In this document: positions 2,927-39,701 of the stretch, one piece after another | Layout: the number at the start of each line of letters is the position of its first letter | Position numbering within the stretch: position 1 is the stretch's first letter | Assembly: GCA_000320545.1 (NCBI GenBank) | Contig: ADNK01001718.1 | Location: forward strand, 1 to 41,160 | Length of the DNA stretch: 41,160 nucleotides | Direction of reading: 5' to 3' | Source: Bigelowiella natans CCMP2755 | Taxonomy: Eukaryota > Protista > Cercozoa | The notes under the pieces: generated by a model | What the model was told of the DNA's origin: nothing | What the model saw: the letters and a program-made list of their open reading frames with translations, nothing else | The model's database searches: none | Program-made: the position numbers and the translations under genes

Positions 2927-3407
2927 TGGCACGGCCACCACAGCCAGGCCAGCAGGCCCTGGCGTGATCAGGATGTCCGAAATTGCAAATGCGAGCTCGC
3001 AGGCGACTAGCAAGCGCAGCACAGCGCGTGCATGTGACCACAAACACATGACAAGTGGGTTGCGGGCTGCTGTGAAAATCCACACTTTCGACAAAACGTG
3101 GTCAAAACATGCTTTTTTGAGGTTTTGACGCACATTGAAATGAAAGGACGAATTTCGCACCAATGTTGAACAAACATGGAAACAAAACCGAGAGGTGTCG
3201 CAAAAATTTGAAGCGCAATTCGTTTCGTGCATGACCATGCTAGCATGGAATTTGCAACGAAAAGGTCCCATGCATGACCGACATCGCAATCAGACACAAT
3301 GTGCATGTGAAAGCAATAATTTCAACGCATGCGCGCGCAAAATGGATTTTGCAATGAAAATCCGGGATCACAGATCACGCCCGGGCCTGGCTGTGGTGGC
3401 CGTGCCA
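2927..3407. mobile_element. MITE-like element with terminal inverted repeats
   Basis: tggcacggccaccacagccaggcc (2927-2950) is the exact reverse complement of 3384-3407. The match extends to gcgtgatc/gatcacgc once an 8-bp insertion in the left arm is removed. No clear TSD. Confidence 0.7.
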
Positions 3408-14049: not shown

Positions 14050-15330
14050 GCACACTCGACCTGGCTTGCTAAGCAAAGCTAGAAAGTTATCACTTTCCAG
14101 CGAATATAGGCGAGTGATGTAACGGAGACGCGAGAATGAACATAGTGTTTTTTGAACATGAAATACAATTAAAGCAGCGCTGTCTAGCTGTGGCTAGGTG
14201 GCCGCTGCTTTGCATAGCTACGTTAGGATGTTCATTGAAAATAGTGTTCACTGCTAGATTGTGCATGGTGTCCAGCAGCGCTAGAGCGCCACAATAACAT
14301 GATCCTTTGACAAAGGCCCGAACTAGTGAAGTGCCATGCTAGCATGTCTAGATTGGGCACTTGTATGACACTCAAAAAAGATCTGCGCATGCACAACAAG
14401 TGAAGGTTTGCATGCGCTGCCACATCACTGTGGTCGATCTTTTTCTTGTTCACGGTAGGACTCCAAGCTTCATACTGTGGCTCCTCTCCAATCCCTTGAT
14501 CCATCATTCACAAAGTATGAGACGGATGTAATGAAATGTTTAAATTTTTTCAATGGTCATCCTAATGTAGCTGTGCAATGCAGCGGCTACAGCGCTTAAA
14601 TTGATTCACAAAGTACAACCGCTACCAGTGCAATTAGCTAACAGACGCGCTGCTTGCCAACGCGTCTGTTAGCCGCAATTACAATCGCACTTCACAACAA
14701 GTTGGTGCAGCGACAAGTAGACAAGTCAAAGGCTGCGCACTTGCTAGCTTGGAAAAAATTGGGTTCCTGCCGTCGTCTCGCACAACTGGCATCAAATTGA
14801 AGCTCCCAAGCTAGCAAGCATTGCCACTTCTTGAATGTGCGCTATCATCTTAGGTTGGCAATCTTGGGAAATTCATGATGTCCCGAGGTCAATGCACACA
14901 AGCTAGCAAGCAGAGGCCACATGCGTGGCACGATGCAGGACATGGATCACCTCCTGCATTGCATGCAGGAGGAAGTACTACACAGTACGCACATCAAAGG
15001 CTTAAATTGAACAAACAACTGACGGCCATCATGAACCGTAACGACGAAACGAAACGCCTCAAAAATGCAGGAAAAAAGAGCTCGCACCGCTGCGCGCATG
15101 GCACGACATGGCCGACCAATTTGCAATGCTTTCAAATGCATGCAACATGCATGTGACACAAGAAACTAACAGATATGCAACTTAAGCGCGGTACCCGCAG
15201 CTCTGCACAGCTGCATCAGGATGACCATTGAAAAGTTTGGTATAGCTAGGAGGTACACGTGTTTACATGCGCGTACACGTACATGAACTTACAAGTCCCT
15301 AAGGAACATTTCATTACATTCGTCTCATGA
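14050..15330 (+). mobile_element. Decayed fragments of the LINE family seen at 20.4-23.6 kb (3' part), riddled with CTAG insertions
   Basis: 14720-15235 aligns by eye with 23055-23525 (e.g. aacaaacaactgacggccatcatg is identical); another 3'-end copy lies at 14170-14240. Confidence 0.8.
14518..14603 (-). mobile_element. 86-bp 5'-truncated LINE insertion with a 12-bp target-site duplication
   Basis: Reverse complement matches 23468-23553 with 8 differences; flanked by attcacaaagta at 14506-14517 and 14604-14615. Confidence 0.9.
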
Positions 15331-16723: not shown

Positions 16724-17026
16724 GGGGTATTAGACAAATATGCCCACTCCTGAGAATCTTAGACAAAAATACCCACTTTTGGGCAATACCACCAACTATT
16801 ATTATAAAAATCTGGACTTAAAAAAATTAATGTTACGTATAAGGTGCCTTATTATTCGGGGAAGATCCAAAATAAATCTATGCGGTCCAAATTTGACATT
16901 AATACACCCAAAATAGATCTACACCATGCAACGGAGCAATGAACAATGAACAATCGGAGCGAGGTTTCCCGAATCACTGTACAGGGGCACCATTTGTCAG
17001 GAGTGGGCATATTTGTCCAAAACACC
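16724..17026. mobile_element. MITE-like element with 21-bp perfect (about 30-bp imperfect) inverted repeats between two divergent genes
   Basis: gacaaatatgcccactcctga (16733-16753) vs tcaggagtgggcatatttgtc (16997-17017); subterminal partial repeat at about 16760-16780; no TSD identified. Confidence 0.65.
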
Positions 17027-17204: not shown

Positions 17205-19556
17205 ATGTTCCGCATCAATGAGCTACTCCAGACCGACCTTCTCGTGGAACTGAATCGTTGCGAGGAGGAGCATCGCAAATTCCGCGACGAGGTGATTGAT
17301 AGATTGGAACAGATGGCCAAGAGCAATCAGCGGAGGAAGGAGGTGAGATTATTTTAATGCCCTGTCCCCATCAATACAACAACATTTCTTTTTTAGATGG
17401 AGGCTAGTAAGAAACAGGTTAACCAGTTGAAACGACTATTGGAGAGGGAACGGATTTCGGAGGCCAAATGGGTGATTCGCAGAGATGACATCCAGAAAAT
17501 GGAGGAAATTGGGAAAGGCGGGTTCGGGGTCGTATATCTGGCCAAGTATTACGGGATGGATGTCGCTGTCAAAGAGTCTAAAGTTGAGTTTGGTAGCTCT
17601 AATCAGGCCCTAGAAGATATGGAGCTTTTCAAGAAAGAGCTCACTACATCGGTTTCCCTTCGGCACGAGAATGTTATTCGGGTGTTTGGAGGGGCTATGG
17701 AACCGAATGTCTTTATTGTGATGGATTACTGCTCCCTCGGAAGCTTGGGTGATGTGATTGATGACTGTGATACATAAAAAATTGCGAACAAGCATCGCCT
17801 CATTTGGTCTAAGCAATTGGCGAACGGACTTCATTTTCTACACAAAAAGTTGGTCATTCACCACGACATAAAGAGCCAGAATGTGCTAGTGGATGAGCGA
17901 GGGGTGGCGAAATGGGCGGATTTCGGTCTGGCCTCTACCCACACGAGCTCCACCTTCTCACAGATGAAGGTCTCTACTGGAGGAACACCCGAGTGGTCGC
18001 CTCCCGAACAGTTCAGGGGTGAATACGGTTACAAGTCGGACATTTGGGGACTGGGACTGGTGATGTATCACCTCGTAGAGATGAGGATGCCGTTTGATGG
18101 GGTCCACAAGAATATGTTGCGGGATGCCATTCAAAGAGGGCGGTTAAAGTATGATAAGATGGATAAGACAGACCCGTTTCTCAAGGAAACCATAAAATTG
18201 TGCCTGAACACAGACAGAACCAAGCGACCCAAGGCAGGTCAACTGGCCGAAGGGCTTAATAAGATTGCTCCTAAAATGAGTTCTCTCCAGTTTTTGAAGC
18301 AACTTGGATTGGACGACGAAGCAGAGGAGCTTAAAGAGAAGTTGGAGATGGCCGAGAAGAACAAAGAAGAGGCCGTCAGAGAGGCTGAAGCGAGAGCAGA
18401 AGCAGATAAGAGAAAATTGCTAGAGGAGAAGCAGAAGGCAGAAGCGAAAGCAGAAGCGGATAAGAGAAAATTGCTACAGGAGAAGCAGAAGGCAGAAGCG
18501 GATAAGAGGAAATTGCTAGAGGAGAAGCAGAAGGCAGAAGCGAAAGCAGAAGCGGATAAGAGAAAATTGCTACAGGAGAAGCAGGAGGCCAACAACCGCA
18601 TCCGGGAGCTGGAAGAAAAGCTTGAGCGAATCTCGCGACTGAGTTCGCCCAAGGAGAAACAGCAGGAAACGAAGAAGGCGATTGAGGACTATCTCAAAGA
18701 AGGGTGGACGAAAATCCCTGATATGGATACTGAGAGGAGTGGTTTGGGTGTGGCCGTTGGGGATGGCAAACTGTTTGCTGTTGGTGGGGAGGATGGTAGT
18801 AATCGTCACAAATCTGGGGAGTATCTGGATTTAAAGAATGTGGATGCGGGGTGGAAGGAAATCCCTGAGATGAATACTATGAGATTTGGTTTGGGTGTAG
18901 CCGTTGGGGATGGCAAACTGTTTGCTGTTGGTGGGTATGATGGTAGTAATTGGCTTAAATCTGGGGAGTATCTGGATTTGAAGAATGTGGATGCGGGGTG
19001 GAAGAAAATCCCTGATATGGATACTGAGAGGGATGCTTTGGGTGTGGCCGTTGGGGATGGCAAACTGTTTGCTGTTGGTGGGTGTGATGGTAAATCTGGG
19101 GAGTATCTGGATTTGAAGAATGTGGATGCGGGGTGGACGAAAATCCCTGATATGGATACTGAGAGGTGGAGTTTGGGTGTGGCCGTTGGGGATGGCAAAC
19201 TGTTTGCTGTTGGTGGGTATGATGGTGGTAATTATCTCAAATCTGGGGAGTATCTAGATTTGAAGAATGTGGATGCGGGATGGAAGAAACTCCCTGATAT
19301 GAATACTAGGAGGCGGTATTTGGGTGTGGCCGTTGGGGATGGCAAACTGTTTGCTGTTGGTGGGTTTGGTGAAAAATCTGGGGAGTATCTGGATTTTAAT
19401 AAAATGGATGCGGGGTGGAAGGAAATCCCTGATATGAATACTAAGAGGAGTGGTTTGGGTGTGGCTGTTGGGGATGGCAAACTGTTTGCTGCTGGTGGGT
19501 GTGATGGTAATTACAACGAGCTTAAATCAGGGGAGTATATTCGCATCGCTATGTAG
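17205..19556 (+). CDS. TKL-like protein kinase + coiled coil + six Kelch repeats; one in-frame TAA at 17775-17777 (possible pseudogene or null allele)
   Basis: Exon 1 is 17205-17342 and exon 2 starts at 17397. Kinase motifs GKGGFG, VAVK, HHDIKSQN, DFG, GTPEWSPPE, SDIWG. ORFs 17397-17777 and 17817-19556 are in the same frame. Kelch signature LFAVGG...Y......W x6. Confidence 0.9.
18384..18588 (+). repeat. Coding tandem repeat (AEAK)AEADKRKLL(E/Q)EKQK x4, coiled coil
   Basis: Near-identical gcagaagcggataagagaaaattgcta units. Confidence 0.9.
18702..19547 (+). repeat. Six ~147-bp Kelch-coding repeats with very high internal nucleotide identity
   Basis: gttggggatggcaaactgtttgctg recurs six times; the first period, 18702 to 18849, is 147 bp. 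Confidence 0.95.
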
Positions 19557-23400: not shown

Positions 23401-23553
23401 GACACGCTAGACCAAATCTTGATGCATTTTCATGCATGCAACACGTGACCAAGGAAACAAACAGATGCAACATGAGCGCTGTAGCCGCTGCATTGCACAG
23501 CTGCATTGGGATGACCATTGAAAAAATTTGAACACTTCATTGCATCCGTCTCA
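20429..23553 (+). mobile_element. Non-LTR retrotransposon (LINE) ORF2: APE endonuclease + reverse transcriptase + C-terminal Cys/His motif; 5'-truncated and inactivated
   Basis: APE motifs VGDTDA, TIDHVL, SDH; RT motifs SPGDDGI, LIPKPGK, QCAF, DASKAH, GAPEGS, HCDD, KCLG; CxxC...H..xC near the C-terminus; one in-frame TAA (21197-21199) and one frameshift (~22600); the 3' end recurs elsewhere in the window. Confidence 0.93.
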
Positions 23554-30799: not shown

Positions 30800-32200
30800 C
30801 TCGAGCTATCGCAAACTGATCAGCTGGCAGCCGGCTTCTTCAGGTCGGCAGGGGGATGGGGGAAGGAACTGTGGGACAGTTACACGAACCCGCGCAAAAC
30901 TGTGCATTTCGTTTCCAGGCAGCAACGCCGTGTGCAACGGGGGTTTTCTTCCTGCGACAACCCCAACCAATCCTTCTCTGCAAGAAGTCGGAGCTCGTTT
31001 GAAAACCCGGATCATTCTCTTCGCTGTTCTCTGCCGCTCTTTTCCACTGAATGCGCACTTCTTTGCACTTCATTGGAACGCTCACCGAGACTGGGTCATG
31101 GACGACAATGCTGGAATGGCGCTGCGTGCGCGTGCTTGCCTGTTGTTCGCAACTGTTTTCACTTGTGGGAGCTGCTGCGTGCCAGTGAGAGTCTCCCATG
31201 TGGTGTTTTCGCACGTCATTTTGCACAATGCTCAGCACAATGCACAATGCTCAATGTTCGATGTTCAATGTCTAGACGTGTCACGTTGCTGTTCGAGGTT
31301 TCTGGCTAGCTAGCTAGCCAGCTAGCCAGGTTTGTCCAGTTGTCGCGAGAACGCACAAGAAAAACGTCTTGGTCACACGATTCGCGATGAACAAGCTGGT
31401 GCAGCAGGTTTTCCAGATGCTGTGTCCAAAATGTCATTGCAGGGACACGTGACTCACGAGAAGAGATGGCTCATGAGTGCTGAATGGCTGGACAGACAAA
31501 GGAGTTCGTGCTGGCGGCCATGCAGCTCTGGAGCTGGCTAGCTGGGCTAGTTTGGCAGTCTAGCAGTGGGGGTGCGAACTTTTCCAGATTTGAGTTCATT
31601 GCTTGATTGGTTGGCTAGCTAGCTAGTTGGGTGCTCGCTGACTTCATCTGGTCTAGCAGTCATGCACGTGTGCACTTGCTAGCTTGCGGGCTTTTCTGGC
31701 CAGGCCTGGAAGGAAGTAGCTCATGCTGCACGCGTTGCTCACTACATCACCGAGTGCAAGCACCAGCACGCTACTAGCTAGCTGGGCTAGCGTGCTGTGG
31801 CGTGCTAGCGTGCTGTGTGGCATGCTGGTGTGGCTGACAAACGATTGTTGTGCCACGAACGTGTACGTCTAGACGTGTTCATGCTAGCGATGACCGCTGG
31901 ACCGTGCTAGCTAGCTAGCGTGCCAGCGCTAGAGCGTGGTGCATGCACGGGATTTCTGCAATGCCAGAATACTAGAATGTTCAGCGCTGGAGCGTGCTAG
32001 CGTGCGCACATGCTGTCACGCATTTGTTGCCAATCTGCTGTTTGTTCATTGTTTTCTTCAATTTAATCACTGTGTGGATGAAGTTTCCAATGCTCTTGCT
32101 TTCATTCGGGGGAAGTGCCTGCGAAGTGCAACTCGAAGAATTTGACAGGAATGTGCTGAAACGCAATGAAATTGTCAGCGAATGATGTGCGAGAGCAATG
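30800..32200. mobile_element. Degenerate TpA-depleted repeat block dense in CTAG insertions
   Basis: Few TpA outside CTAG; similarity of 31145-31180 to 2885-2920; more than 10 NNNN-CTAG-NNNN units in 31300-32005. Confidence 0.7.
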
Positions 32201-35117: not shown

Positions 35118-36097
35118 ATGTCTCTCGAGTCCAAGCAAATCGCTACCATTCGCACCCTCGCCGCCGATGTTGTGCAAAAGGCTAACTCTGGGCACCCTGG
35201 TTGCTGCCCTTTAAGTTCTTTTATAAATTCATTGAGTCAGCGTATTAAAGTTGGTTTGCGTTTTCACTTGTGCAATGATGACATGATGATATACGACATG
35301 CGCATCCCAAAGCGACGAAGGCAATGTTTTGAAGAAAAACATGTACTTTAAGGTGCGCCAATGGGGATGGCTGCTATGGCACACGTACTTTGGGGAGAAG
35401 TCATGAAATACAGTCCAAAGAATCCCGACTGGGTGGAAAGAATAAAACGACACATTTGTCTTACGTCTATGACCAACACAGGGCGTCACAATGTTGTTTA
35501 ATCATCAGATGGGAAAAGATCGCTTTGTACTTTCCAACGGACATAGTTGTGCACTACAATACCTCATGATGTATCTCACTGGCTACGATAGTGTAGGAAT
35601 GGATGATTTGAAGAAGTTTCGCGTTTGCCGTAGCCGGTCTGCTTCGATTTTGTTTGGATATAAAAACAATCTTCTAAACAAAGTTGCATCTTCTATGAAG
35701 AACCCCTGGACATCCAGAACGTCACGCAACTAAAGGAATCGAAGTAAGCACTGGACCTTTGGGACAAGGTGTGTCACTATTTTAAGTTTTAGCTCAAAAT
35801 CTTATCGATCTGAAATAAAAATAAGAAATCAAGATTAAGAAATTAAGATAATTTATGCAATTTATACGCATCGAATTGTTGAACCCTTAGGAATTAGCAA
35901 TGCTGTTGGATTGGCAATCGCCGAGTCACATATGGCTGCCACTTACAACAAGCCCGATTTCAAGGTGTTTAACAATTTCACCTACGTCTTGTGTGGAGAT
36001 GGTTGCATGCAGGAAGGGGTTGCATCTGAAGCGTGCTCTCTCGCAGGCCATTTGAAACTTGGCAAGGTTGTCATCCTCCTACCCCCCCCTCCCCCCT

Positions 36098-36150
<53 letters not shown>

Positions 36151-38687
36151 TGGACACGTTTTCCTCATATTATTCATAGCTAACGTATTCTCTTTGCAGC
36201 TAATTGTCCTCTATGATGACAACAATATTACAATCGATGGAGATACGGATCTTAGTTTTACAGAGGACGTTGGCAAACGCTTTGAAGCATATGGATGGCA
36301 AGTCTTAGAGGTAAGCACGAAATATCTTAAATTTGTTTACGTACGTTAATTAATCATATTTAAAGGTTAAGGATGCCAACCATGACACTGAAGCAATTAA
36401 GGCAGCAATAGTTCTAGCAAAGCAGGTTAGTAAATAAAATTAAATTAAGTATATAAACGATTAATTTCAGTTTTCTTTATTTTTATTGTTTACGTTAGGA
36501 AACAGAAAAACCAACAATTATCAAATGCAAAACTGTCATTGGATTTGGATCTAGCAAAGAAGGGACTCATGGTGTTCACGGGGCCCCTCTAGGCGAGGAC
36601 GACATTGCTCAGGTACAAGGATCATCCAGCAGTAAATTGTCTATTTATATGAACAGGTAATCTCAATTAGTTTGACTAAACTTTAAGGTAAAGGAAAAAT
36701 TTGGCTTTGACTCAAAGCAGAAATTTTTCGTTCCAGAGGAGGTGAGATTGTTTTTAGCATGTCTACTTCGCCATTCATTCTTTTATTTGGTTTTCTGAAG
36801 GTTCTTTCCGCATACCGAGGGAAAATTGATGAAGGAAAGAAAATGGTTGCTGAGTATGAGAAAATGTATTCCAAATATGAGGCTAAGTACGCAAAAGAAG
36901 CTGCCGAAATTAAGCGCAGATTTGCACAAAAACTTCCTGAAGGATGGGAGGATGTGTTACCTACGTATAAGCCAGGAGACAAAGCACTTGCCACCCGATC
37001 TCTATCTGGAAAGGTGCTGAATGCCTTGGCCAATATTATGCCGGAGCTAGTTGGAGGTTCTGCAGACCTAACACCATCAAACAAGGTAAATAGCGACGGA
37101 TTTATTATGACATTTTGATTTTATGTAATATGATTCCCTTGTCCAGACTGCATTAGGATGTACTGTTGACTACCAGAGTACTAGTCCTCAAGGAAGGTAG
37201 TTATCACTGTAGATTATTCTCAATATAAAGATCAAATGAGCACATGACGATCTGCTGTAGGTATATTCGTTTCGGAGTTCGTGAACATGGAATGGGAGCA
37301 ATTGGCAACGGGCTCCATGCTTACGGAGGTAGCTAATATGTTCAGAACTTTTATGTAAACGAATTCGGTGTCTGAAATTAAACCGAAACCATTTATCATA
37401 GGAATCGTTCCATTCACCGCGACATTCCTAACATTTATCGAGTACATGTTCCCAGCAGTCCGACTCGCCGCTCTGAGTGGTTCGTTTATATAGGACATCT
37501 TATCCAATCATTGCGTATATTTTTCTTTCGTCTTCCCAGGGCACAAGCATATTTTCATCATGACTCATGATTCGCTTGGCATCGGTGAAGATGGGCCTAC
37601 CCACCAACCCATCGAACAGGTGCAGAAATCTGACAACATCACCATATTTTGAAGCAGAATTTAAGCGGTAATTTCGTTTATCAGGTCAATATCGTCCGTG
37701 CAACTCCGAACGTTTTGATGTTCCGCCCTGCAGACGGTGAGACTAAATATTGCATCCACAAATATCTACCATCTGCAATCACTCCTCGAAATTAGTACTT
37801 CTGGTATTTGTGCGATGTTGACAACAGGAAATGAGACCAGTGGAGCTTATAAGGTTGCTATGGAACAAGAGGACACACCATCTGTTCTGGCTCTCAGCAG
37901 ACAAGTAATTCAACAATTTGATGACTTACTTTTTATTTTATTGAAAATCTAGATTCATTTTAGTTATCTGAGTAAGCTTTACGGTATCTTTTTGCGCAGA
38001 ATCTTCCTCAACTTGCGGGCACAAGTATCGAAGGTGTATCTAAAGGTGCTTACACGATCGTCGAAGAGAAGGTTACTTCACCAAAAATAACATGAAAACC
38101 AGAATGTGATGGTTTTTATCTTTATATCAGGACCCAGATGCAATTTTGATTGCGACAGGGTCTGAGGTAGCTCTTTGTGTCGAAGCTGCAAAGTTATTGG
38201 AAGGCAAATTTTCAATCGTTTCGATGCCATGCGCCAAGCTATTTGATGAGCAGCCGATCGAGTATCGTAGAAAAGTGCTTCCTTTCAAGACTCCAATCAT
38301 TGCTGTCGAGATGGCTGCTGCTTCAGGGTACAAAGAGAATTCGTCCACCAATTTTTGAGTGAACTAACTTAGAAACAATCAATCTCATTATTATTAGGTG
38401 GTATAAGTATGCAAATCATGCAATTGTGATGAGAACCTTCGGAGTATCCGGGAAAGGATCGGTGTGTAAATTAAAATTTTCAATATTTTAGCTTAGCATT
38501 GCTAAAACCACTTGTTTGTTTTCAGCATTGTATGGATTACTTTGGTTTTACACCAAAGAAGATTGCAGGCTCAATCAAAGAGTGGCTCGGCAATGCAGGA
38601 AAGGAAATGAAGAGTCATGGATTTGCAGTTGCAGCTCAGTTTGAGGAACCTGCCAAACGCAATTTGCATTACGTTGAATACATCTAG
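35118..38687 (+). CDS. TKL: Transketolase (multi-exon; no targeting extension, so probably cytosolic)
   Basis: KANSGHPG|[35 protein letters not shown] (TPP-binding), [44 protein letters not shown]; stop ends at 38687. Confidence 0.97.
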
Positions 38688-38859
38688 ATGGAATCAGTTG
38701 CAGATATATTATCATCTCAGCACCTTTGCCGTGCTAGCTCTAGCTCATTAAATTAAGACAATAGCTCTTGTTCTCAATTTATTTACTTACGACCCGATGC
38801 GACACGATGCCAAGGATTGATAATCACGACCAAGTGATGACTATTATCAGCGCCCATAG

Positions 38860-39510
38860 TGCATGCTTGCTAGAACAGCATCAGTATTTCGCCACTAAGC
38901 GCTAATAGCAACGCGCCTTTTCATAGTAGCTCATCATTGAGCGCAGGCTAGCAGGAGCTGCTGGGAGGAACTAGCGAAGCTATTCTGTGCTAGCTAGCTA
39001 GCATGCTCTAGATGCTGTCTAGCTAGCTAGCTGTGATCGAGACGGATGCAATGAAGTGATTGAATCTTTTCAATGGTCATCCTAATGTACTAGTGTAGCT
39101 GCATGTCTCTGGCTAGCTAACTAGCTCTAGCTAGCTAGCTGTTGGAGTGAACTAGTGCATTTGCAGATTTGACATCTCTAGATCTTGCTAGCTAGCTAGC
39201 TTGTGCACATTCCATTGTCATTGCAACTCACGCTAGCTGCCTAGCTGCGTAGCGAGCTAGCGAGGTAGCTAGGCAGAGACACACCTAGACACAGTTTGCA
39301 GAGTCTAGGTGTGTGCTAGCTAGCTAGCACTACTAGACAAGTAGAGCACATCACTTGCTAGCATGCACACACAGTCTAGCAGTGCTTGCTGGCTAGCTGG
39401 CATGTCGAGCTAACGAGTGCTAGAGTGCACTCTGGCTAGCAGGACACCTGCGCTTTCTAGCCATCTAGCTGTACGCACGTTCACGAATGTGTGTATTACT
39501 AGATTAGTGC
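38860..39510. mobile_element. Extremely decayed repeat block, including an inverted LINE 3'-end at ~39039-39105, saturated with CTAG insertions
   Basis: gagacggatgcaatgaagtg...ttttcaatggtcatcctaatgta matches 14519-14569; about 20 exact or one-mismatch NNNN-(CTAG)n-NNNN units. Confidence 0.8.
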
Positions 39511-39701
39511 AACGAACACCAATGAGAAATGTGACGTGTTATGTAACTGCTGGTTAGTTCATACGTGCATACATAGGTGTCTAAAGTCCCGCAGGCATGT
39601 TTATGCTAAATATGTAGACGCATCCTGCTGCGATAAATGTTACAGCGATCTGATGAGAGAGGAGAGGAGAGGGAAGTGGAGAGAAACGGAAGTATGTATA
39701 C

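Follow-up and report, generated by a model that had tools for sequence, protein, structure and literature searches.

Stacked CTAG runs in Bigelowiella natans and the nested re-insertion of an 8-bp scar

The DNA analysed here, called the window, is a stretch of 41,160 nucleotides from Bigelowiella natans CCMP2755 (assembly GCA_000320545.1, contig ADNK01001718.1, positions 1 to 41,160 of the forward strand). It is the whole of its contig (label C2019 in the sample) in an assembly of 91.4 Mb and 3736 contigs, has about 45% G+C, and contains many dinucleotide repeats and split genes. A sample of 241 kb was made up of the window and two further stretches of 100 kb, one from contig C254 and one from contig C435; these contigs were picked since the match lists showed them to be long, and this gives the sample a slight bias. 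Genome-wide figures reach beyond the sample and come from pattern counts together with the first 100 matches listed for a pattern. The main features of the window, with related copies in the sample, are the following.

35118-38687, plus strand: split transketolase gene, with its stop codon at 38685-38687
17817-19556: open frame of 579 amino acids, containing a 147-bp tandem-repeat array
1031-1055: contig-internal telomere-type repeat TAACCC, four copies
2937-3397 and 16742-17008, and C435:5390-6657: inverted-repeat pairs, 17-18 nt each, with identical 4-bp flanks (GGCC, ATAT, ATGT)
39039-39092: 50-bp LINE-like repeat, inside the second island below and between two (CTAG)3 runs; copies of 87-90% identity at 14519-14569 and 23504-23552 of the window, C254:88082-88135 and C435:90485-90541
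31250-32064: island with 8 bracketed single CTAGs (non-CTAG targets), 14 single CTAGs, 1 doublet and 3 triplets
38888-39566: island with 10 bracketed single CTAGs (non-CTAG targets) and 5 triplets

The inverted-repeat pairs are candidate small transposons, and their ends are not of the form CT..AG. CTAG-rich DNA starts at 38734, about 50 bp past the transketolase stop codon, and this stretch may in part belong to the 3' UTR. When the metagenome collection was searched with a 26-mer of the last transketolase exon, which lies beside the CTAG-rich DNA at 38734-39566, no match was obtained.

The window contains 139 single CTAGs, one exact doublet and 8 exact triplets, while 100 dinucleotide-preserving shuffles of the window gave no (CTAG)3 at all. 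A run is here said to be bracketed when the 4-mers on its two sides are identical. This is the case for 31 of the 139 singles (binomial P 1e-44 against 1/256) and for 4 of the 8 triplets (P 2e-8 against 1/256). The triplets of the window, and the chains in which some units differ from CTAG by one base, are listed here with one pair of overlapping single scars.

2742-2761: GCGG-CTAG-CCAG-CTAG-GCGG, three-unit chain, TA of the middle unit changed to CA
14180-14201: CTGT-CTAG-CTGT and GTGG-CTAG-GTGG, two separate hits at one spot, with targets overlapping by 2 nt
31298-31333: seven-unit chain read from the sequence, GTTT-[CTGG CTAG CTAG CTAG CCAG CTAG CCAG]-GTTT
31611-31630: TTGG-(CTAG)3-TTGG, nested scar, the first duplication still bracketing
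31770-31789: GCTA-CTAG-CTAG-CTGG-GCTA, three-unit chain with TA of one unit changed to TG; holds the sole exact doublet of the window (31774-31781)
31903-31922: CGTG-(CTAG)3-CGTG, nested scar
38990-39001: (CTAG)3 with non-identical flanks, TGTG and CATG
39015-39034: CTGT-(CTAG)3-CTGT, nested scar
39127-39138: (CTAG)3 with non-identical flanks
39184-39203: CTTG-(CTAG)3-CTTG, nested scar
39316-39327: (CTAG)3 with non-identical flanks in inverted arrangement (GTG...CAC)
39385-39404: CTTG-CTGG-CTAG-CTGG-CATG, core mutated to CTGG and copied to both sides of a new CTAG, outer 4-mers one base apart

Six of these stacked runs had been picked out in a first-pass annotation, and all six are confirmed in place and far above chance. 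For the seven-unit chain, whose units occupy 31302-31329, the GTTT brackets at 31298-31301 and 31330-31333 were absent from that annotation; the chain also includes an inner scar CCAG-CTAG-CCAG, and all seven units lie inside one 4-bp duplication. The left CTTG of the scar at 39184-39203 shares 2 nt with the right ATCT of a neighbouring ATCT-CTAG-ATCT (39174-39185). If units that differ from CTAG at one base are counted as well, the bracketed chains of the window have 1, 3 or 7 units.

At two places in the window, 31649-31660 and 38986-39005, the flanks of a scar have TG on one side and CA at the same position on the other (TGGT and CAGT, TGTG and CATG). Such pairs are expected if a target containing TA is duplicated and the two copies then mutate in opposite ways. 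The flanks TGTG and CATG of the triplet at 38990-39001 could both derive from TATG, through TA-to-TG and TA-to-CA.

The basic element of all these arrangements is an 8-bp scar, in which a 4-bp target X is converted to X-CTAG-X. In the 241-kb sample, 104 of the 654 single CTAGs and 6 of the 15 triplets are bracketed by identical 4-mers. When all spacers between exact 4-nt repeats at an offset of 8 are compared in the same sample, only CTAG (20-fold) and CCAG/CTGG (6.4-fold) are enriched, the latter two being the products of TpA-to-CpA/TpG mutation of CTAG; repeats of 3 nt and 5 nt are enriched no more than chance extension of the 4-nt repeat gives. The remnant is thus flanked by a target duplication of fixed length, 4 bp, as in the footprint of a cut-and-paste excision. 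The possibility that CATG is a second scar core was discarded, since CATG is without enrichment as a spacer.

The duplicated 4-mer X has in the sample C (55%) or A (32%) as first base and G (55%) or T (32%) as last base, and 36% of all X are of the form C-N-N-G. The target preference is C-W-W-G or, more loosely, M-N-N-K. Genome-wide, among the first 100 matches listed, C-N-N-G-flanked sites have identical sides in 74% of cases at n = 1 and 76% at n = 3, where n is the number of CTAG units in the run, against about 10% by chance. The target spectra of single scars and triplets also agree: among the first 100 matches listed for each, CATG, CAAG, CGTG, CCAG and CAGG occur 14, 8, 8, 8 and 8 times at n = 1 and 13, 8, 9, 8 and 8 times at n = 3. 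That the C..G preference could be an artefact of TpA mutation in TA targets was considered and rejected as the main cause, with 14 fitting flank pairs against 6 in a displaced control.

The flanks bear directly on a reading in which selection maintains GCTAGCTAGCTAGC because it functions as a palindromic signal downstream of genes, for instance as a terminator element or a site bound by a protein. Runs do occur in islands just beyond gene ends, and the 14-mer GCTAGCTAGCTAGC is perfectly palindromic. Yet what flanks the runs is an arbitrary duplicated 4-mer, drawn from the spectrum also seen at single scars, the units decay freely to CCAG and CTGG, the run lengths vary from 2 to 8 units, and nothing in the present data indicates conservation; selection on such a signal is therefore a very improbable explanation.

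The TpA-to-CpA/TpG spectrum, by which CTAG decays, has been measured in B. natans in a 2026 preprint (10.64898/2026.01.13.699255). In the mutation-accumulation lines of the same study, 0 of 21 de novo indels were of the CTAG type, and from this follows that the scar-forming process is rare, or inactive, in culture. Seven de novo insertions in these lines end in ACA (for instance TACA, TGACA, CCAACA and TACACA), and one multinucleotide change is TGGC>AACA (Table S2 of that study). The insertions that end in ACA may constitute a second stereotyped insertion signature.

The first-pass annotation had proposed that triplets arise when a second event takes the CTAG core of an earlier scar as its own 4-bp target. 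As an example, consider a scar X-CTAG-X in which the core has already mutated to CCAG. If this mutated core is re-used as a 4-bp target, it will be duplicated around a new CTAG, and CCAG-CTAG-CCAG will be found within the old bracket. If, instead, slippage or a single event creates the triplet and the units decay afterwards, single mutants should greatly outnumber double mutants, and CCAG paired with CCAG should be as frequent as CCAG paired with CTGG. The two cases were distinguished with the genome-wide pattern C-V-N-G CCAG C-Y-R-G C-Y-R-G C-V-N-G, all 78 matches of which were inspected. With identical outer 4-mers (X not CCAG), CCAG-CTAG-CCAG occurs 31 times and CCAG-CTAG-CTGG once, while CCAG-CTAG-CTAG occurs 8 times, CCAG-CCAG-CTAG 3 times and CCAG three times in a row twice. 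Same-type pairs are in excess, with P = 4e-6 against mixed pairs and P = 4e-26 against the count of single mutants, and this means that the earlier scar was re-entered and its 4-bp core duplicated. Hypermutation of one strand was rejected as a source of these twins: adjacent double and triple mutants should then match or exceed the outer pairs with an intact middle unit, and the counts are otherwise. The twin pattern arises only if a scar that has already mutated is duplicated, over 4 bp, around a newly added CTAG, and in this respect it is decisive.

Re-insertion also occurs out of frame. When scars of the type Y-CTAG-Y are peeled away from the sequence, ATAT-CTAG-ATAT is found near position 30860 of C435, interrupted by AGAT-CTAG-AGAT. 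A later event has, in other words, duplicated part of the product of an earlier one, and this is seen both in frame and out of frame. With the twins and the scar within a scar, the proposal of a recurrent process that takes earlier scar cores as targets is borne out. The number of triplets per island in relation to scar density, which rises only when the window selected beforehand is counted, was not used as evidence.

These observations are at variance with the view that (CTAG)n is a tetranucleotide microsatellite, in which slippage adds CTAG units one at a time and the flanks of a triplet are inherited from a single scar. A single CCAG cannot by slippage yield CCAG-CTAG-CCAG (31 against one mixed pair), a mutated unit should spread only to its neighbour (CCAG-CTAG-CCAG 31 times, CCAG-CCAG-CTAG 3 times), and scars out of frame inside other scars cannot be produced in this way.

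The distribution of run lengths leads in the same direction. Genome-wide, overlapping (CTAG)k is counted 14723, 5555, 1159, 331 and 61 times for k = 2 to 6, and about 18 times for k = 7 from the matches listed. The corresponding numbers of exact (CTAG)n runs, which span 2 to 8 units, are 4772, 3568, 558, about 227, about 28 and about 11 for n = 2 to 7. The successive ratios from n = 2 to n = 7 alternate (0.75, 0.16, 0.41, 0.12 and 0.41), and the curvature of the logarithm of the counts switches sign at each n, with z = +28, -8.8, +5.1 and -2.5 at n = 3 to 6. The control (GATC)n in the same genome drops steadily (2367, 85, 13). In the 241-kb sample, doublets amount to 2.3% of singles for CTAG and to 0.7-2.5% for other palindromic 4-mers. 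The CTAG share lies within the range of the others, and the raw n = 2 count is therefore background. Triplets of other palindromic 4-mers are absent from the 241 kb, except for AGCT, which is CTAG in another frame. The excess hence begins at n = 3, and odd lengths remain over the trend.

Raw runs mix scars with this background, and bracketed runs were therefore counted genome-wide with the pattern C-V-N-G (CTAG)n C-V-N-G, the listed matches being tallied by eye. For n = 1, 2 and 3 the totals are extrapolated from the first 100 matches listed.

n = 1: 18271 matches; first 100 listed are 66 unique sites, 49 with identical flanks; estimate about 8950
n = 2: 376 matches; first 100 listed are 68 unique sites, 39 with identical flanks; estimate about 147
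n = 3: 456 matches; first 100 listed are 63 unique sites, 48 with identical flanks; estimate about 219
n = 4: 49 matches, all inspected; 32 unique sites, 20 with identical flanks
n = 5: 16 matches, all inspected; 9 unique sites, 5 with identical flanks

Intact brackets appear to be kept by about 1/6 of all triplets in the genome, a fraction that rests on the estimated share of C-N-N-G among the targets.

The bracketed series is not geometric, since the count falls to 1.6% from n = 1 to n = 2 and then rises 1.5-fold at n = 3. A path that adds one unit at a time is unfit to give this series, nor do the alternating raw ratios show the steady fall of the (GATC)n control. In favour of slippage are the existence of even runs with intact brackets, and an n = 4 to n = 3 ratio (0.156) that equals the 0.15 of (GATC)n. 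Slippage as the main source of n = 3 is already contradicted and, as a general account of the runs, has very little probability left; it survives only for changes by single units.

How far does the odd-number rule of the first-pass annotation hold? Inside the window its claim of 1 or 3 units, and never 2, stands, in the sense that the single doublet belongs to a three-unit chain with one CTGG. Genome-wide the claim gives way to about 147 bracketed runs with n = 2 and 20 with n = 4, side by side with about 219 at n = 3 and 5 at n = 5, and a strict rule of odd numbers fails. That n = 2 was missed in the window thus reflects the small number of runs there. The anticipated excess of odd n in the genome-wide histogram is there when odd n is compared with the trend through even n, as the z values above indicate, but not in the bracketed counts at n = 4 and n = 5, where the even class is the larger (20 against 5). 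A geometric distribution with n = 2 at least as common as n = 3 had been named as the opposite outcome; what is found is a distribution that is not geometric, in which n = 3 exceeds n = 2 among bracketed runs while n = 2 exceeds n = 3 (4772 against 3568) among raw ones.

When n = 3 arises from n = 1 by in-frame hits, the product of hit rate and time is fixed by the ratio n = 3/n = 1 and equals 0.049. The same rate predicts about 11 bracketed runs with n = 5, where 5 are observed, and a raw n = 5/n = 3 ratio of 0.049, where 0.064 is observed. Even runs with brackets can not be reached by any pair of canonical 8-bp events, and a second process must for this reason be assumed. If n = 2 runs serve as seeds that grow by two units, about 11 bracketed runs with n = 4 are predicted, in comparison with the 20 observed (P = 0.007). 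The levels of bracketed even runs fit ordinary 4-bp duplication or slippage, and since (GATC)n has the same n = 4/n = 3 ratio, the even runs that remain are most simply put down to ordinary slippage. An alternative source is a single event that leaves a two-unit scar. Among the matches listed, bracketed n = 2 runs have CATG as target in 17 of 39 cases and CAGG or CCTG in 0 of 39, compared with 29 of 195 for CAGG or CCTG elsewhere (P = 0.006, post hoc), and neither source of doublets accounts for the absence of CAGG and CCTG.

Doublets of another construction were also seen. In 4 of the 15 doublets of the sample (C435:66759, 66925 and 90576; C254:41270) a 9-nt insert, consisting of CTAGCTAG and one more base, lies between 4-nt repeats (3 nt in one case). 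At C1058:50054-50093 the sequence reads CACG-CTAGCTAG-CACG-CTAGCTAG-CGTG-CTAGCTAG-CACG, which is a doublet array with a period of 12 bp and one flipped spacer.

The two-unit scar has a more general form, in which each event leaves one, two or three CTAGs, for instance because element ends are joined in different registers. Some such non-canonical source is required by the bracketed n = 2 runs (about 147), and the agreement in targets between n = 1 and n = 3 would be predicted here just as it is by nesting. The formation of multi-unit scars in one step does not, however, predict mutated twins around an intact CTAG, and it leaves n = 3 over n = 2 without a reason. Furthermore, CTAG itself fits the target preference, so nested hits are due anyway at near the observed frequency and leave little room for another source. 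We regard one-step formation as improbable, and nested re-insertion as the preferred origin of the triplets.

The first-pass annotation went on to suggest that an earlier CTAG is a preferred target. In the islands of the sample, the fraction of 4-mers that has been hit is 8.8% for CTAG (19/215), 5.6% for other C-N-N-G (29/515) and 53/8599 for all other 4-mers. A sharper comparison is obtained when the scar is used as its own control, because X-CTAG-X contains one CTAG and two copies of X of equal age. A hit in X gives X-CTAG-X-CTAG-X, and this arrangement is present about 322 times genome-wide (686 matches; all three 4-mers equal in 47 of the 61 sites listed), as compared with about 219 for X-(CTAG)3-X; like the bracketed totals, the re-hit total is extrapolated from the first 100 matches listed, tallied by eye. 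When the presence of two X targets is allowed for, the hit frequency of CTAG is 1.36 times that of the average adjacent duplicated X. The ratio depends strongly on X: it is about 0.6 in relation to CATG, 1.2 to CAAG, 2 to CAGG, and 4-5 to CGTG and CCAG. What makes CTAG a good target is its C-W-W-G form. As a member of that class it is indeed preferred, by about 1.4 times over the average neighbouring 4-mer, but it is hit less than CATG. There is no sign that the status of old scar adds anything to targeting, special homing is not needed, and nesting is about as frequent as the preference among other targets would lead one to expect.

Some of the CATG re-hits are possibly 8-bp slippage, since the same 20-mer, CATG-CTAG-CATG-CTAG-CATG, is a plain tandem array elsewhere: in metagenomes it occurs in 22 unrelated contigs, all of which are plain (CATGCTAG)n arrays without other X-CTAG-X marks. 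Some of these contigs are of high GC, and one array adjoins a gene for a putative plasmid partition (ParA-like) ATPase.

All of this is brought together in an account with recurrent 8-bp insertion, nested re-hits, slippage or duplication of units, and TpA decay, which we hold to be probably correct. A single mutational process would add 8 bp per event, CTAG and a copy of the 4-bp target, to give X-CTAG-X, and would act on non-coding DNA, in short islands behind genes, favouring C-W-W-G (more loosely M-N-N-K). The core of an old scar would be re-hit about as often as other good targets in the same island; its duplication around a new CTAG would give X-(CTAG)3-X, and further in-frame hits would give 5 and 7 units. 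On top of this, ordinary 4-bp tandem duplication or slippage would add or remove single units and so create even runs, and TpA-to-CpA/TpG mutation would convert units to CCAG or CTGG. The data contain the 8-bp unit with its 4-bp duplication and constant CTAG, the target preference, re-insertion in frame and out of frame, and an overlap in time with TpA mutation. As to the agent, we infer a DDE-type cut-and-paste enzyme with 4-bp staggered cuts, and excision of a transposon; after excision, end-joining of the element's two ends, or of their self-complementary overhangs, would then leave CTAG, much as Tc1/mariner elements leave their footprints. A search of 241 kb for inverted-repeat elements that end in CT..AG and are flanked by a 4-bp duplication found none. 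Nor did these 241 kb contain any paralogous alignment across a (CTAG)n run, the matches being limited to the 50-bp LINE-like repeat and microsatellites.

Excision footprints of Tc1/mariner elements and Sleeping Beauty consist of TA, 2-3 nt of the element ends and TA. They resemble the scars of B. natans in that a short, nearly constant palindromic remnant stays enclosed by the two copies of the target duplication, and in that they recur at preferred targets. They differ in that the duplication in B. natans is 4 bp of variable sequence rather than TA and the remnant is CTAG throughout. Further differences are that the search of 241 kb revealed no element whose ends match, and that there are tens of thousands of scars, all within islands behind genes. 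Duplications of 2-4 bp linked to topoisomerase II are known from yeast top2 mutants and from the cancer signature ID17, and a 4-bp copy is what fill-in of a 4-nt staggered break would give; those duplications are, however, directly tandem and have no constant CTAG between the copies. With tetranucleotide microsatellites the CTAG runs share the head-to-tail units and, it appears, a rate of single-unit changes like that of (GATC)n, whose n = 4/n = 3 ratio is likewise about 0.15, in contrast to the peak at three units, the saw-tooth that favours odd n, the duplicated 4-mer flanks and the mutated units in matched pairs. The nested transposons of maize intergenic DNA likewise have later insertions inside earlier ones, in an order that can be read by peeling, but there the nested item is a whole element and here it is an 8-bp scar. 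With the integrase of prototype foamy virus and with Ginger DNA transposons the scars have in common a 4-bp target duplication with a weakly palindromic consensus, here C-W-W-G; elements of that kind measure kilobases and remain in place after integration, whereas only 4 bp lie between the duplicates in B. natans. Retroviral integration, as described in PMC4422553, gives duplications of 4-6 bp at weakly palindromic targets.

An agent other than a conventional transposon can be imagined: a host-encoded or domesticated enzyme might repeatedly cut the DNA downstream of genes with a 4-bp stagger and close each cut by adding an invariant CTAG. The runs would then be a record of its repeated action on C-W-W-G. 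We consider this unlikely; if true, it would be a form of site-directed insertional mutagenesis undescribed in any eukaryote. Our literature search found no published description of CTAG scars, and the genome-wide counts of run lengths and brackets, the twin comparison, the re-hit comparison and the existence of even runs are believed to be new here.

With the stacked runs, what was a static oddity becomes a process open to measurement. Each event appears in them as a 4-bp staggered cut and the addition of exactly CTAG, and the process has lasted long enough to strike scars that were already mutated, so that a hit rate per site can be obtained. The search for the agent is thereby narrowed to DDE-type enzymes that cut with a 4-bp stagger and act on ends leaving CT..AG. 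A caution also follows for the use of (CTAG)n in this organism, where it is not an ordinary microsatellite and its length shifts mostly by two units. Finally, the stacked runs allow events to be placed in order relative to the TpA hypermutation reported for B. natans.
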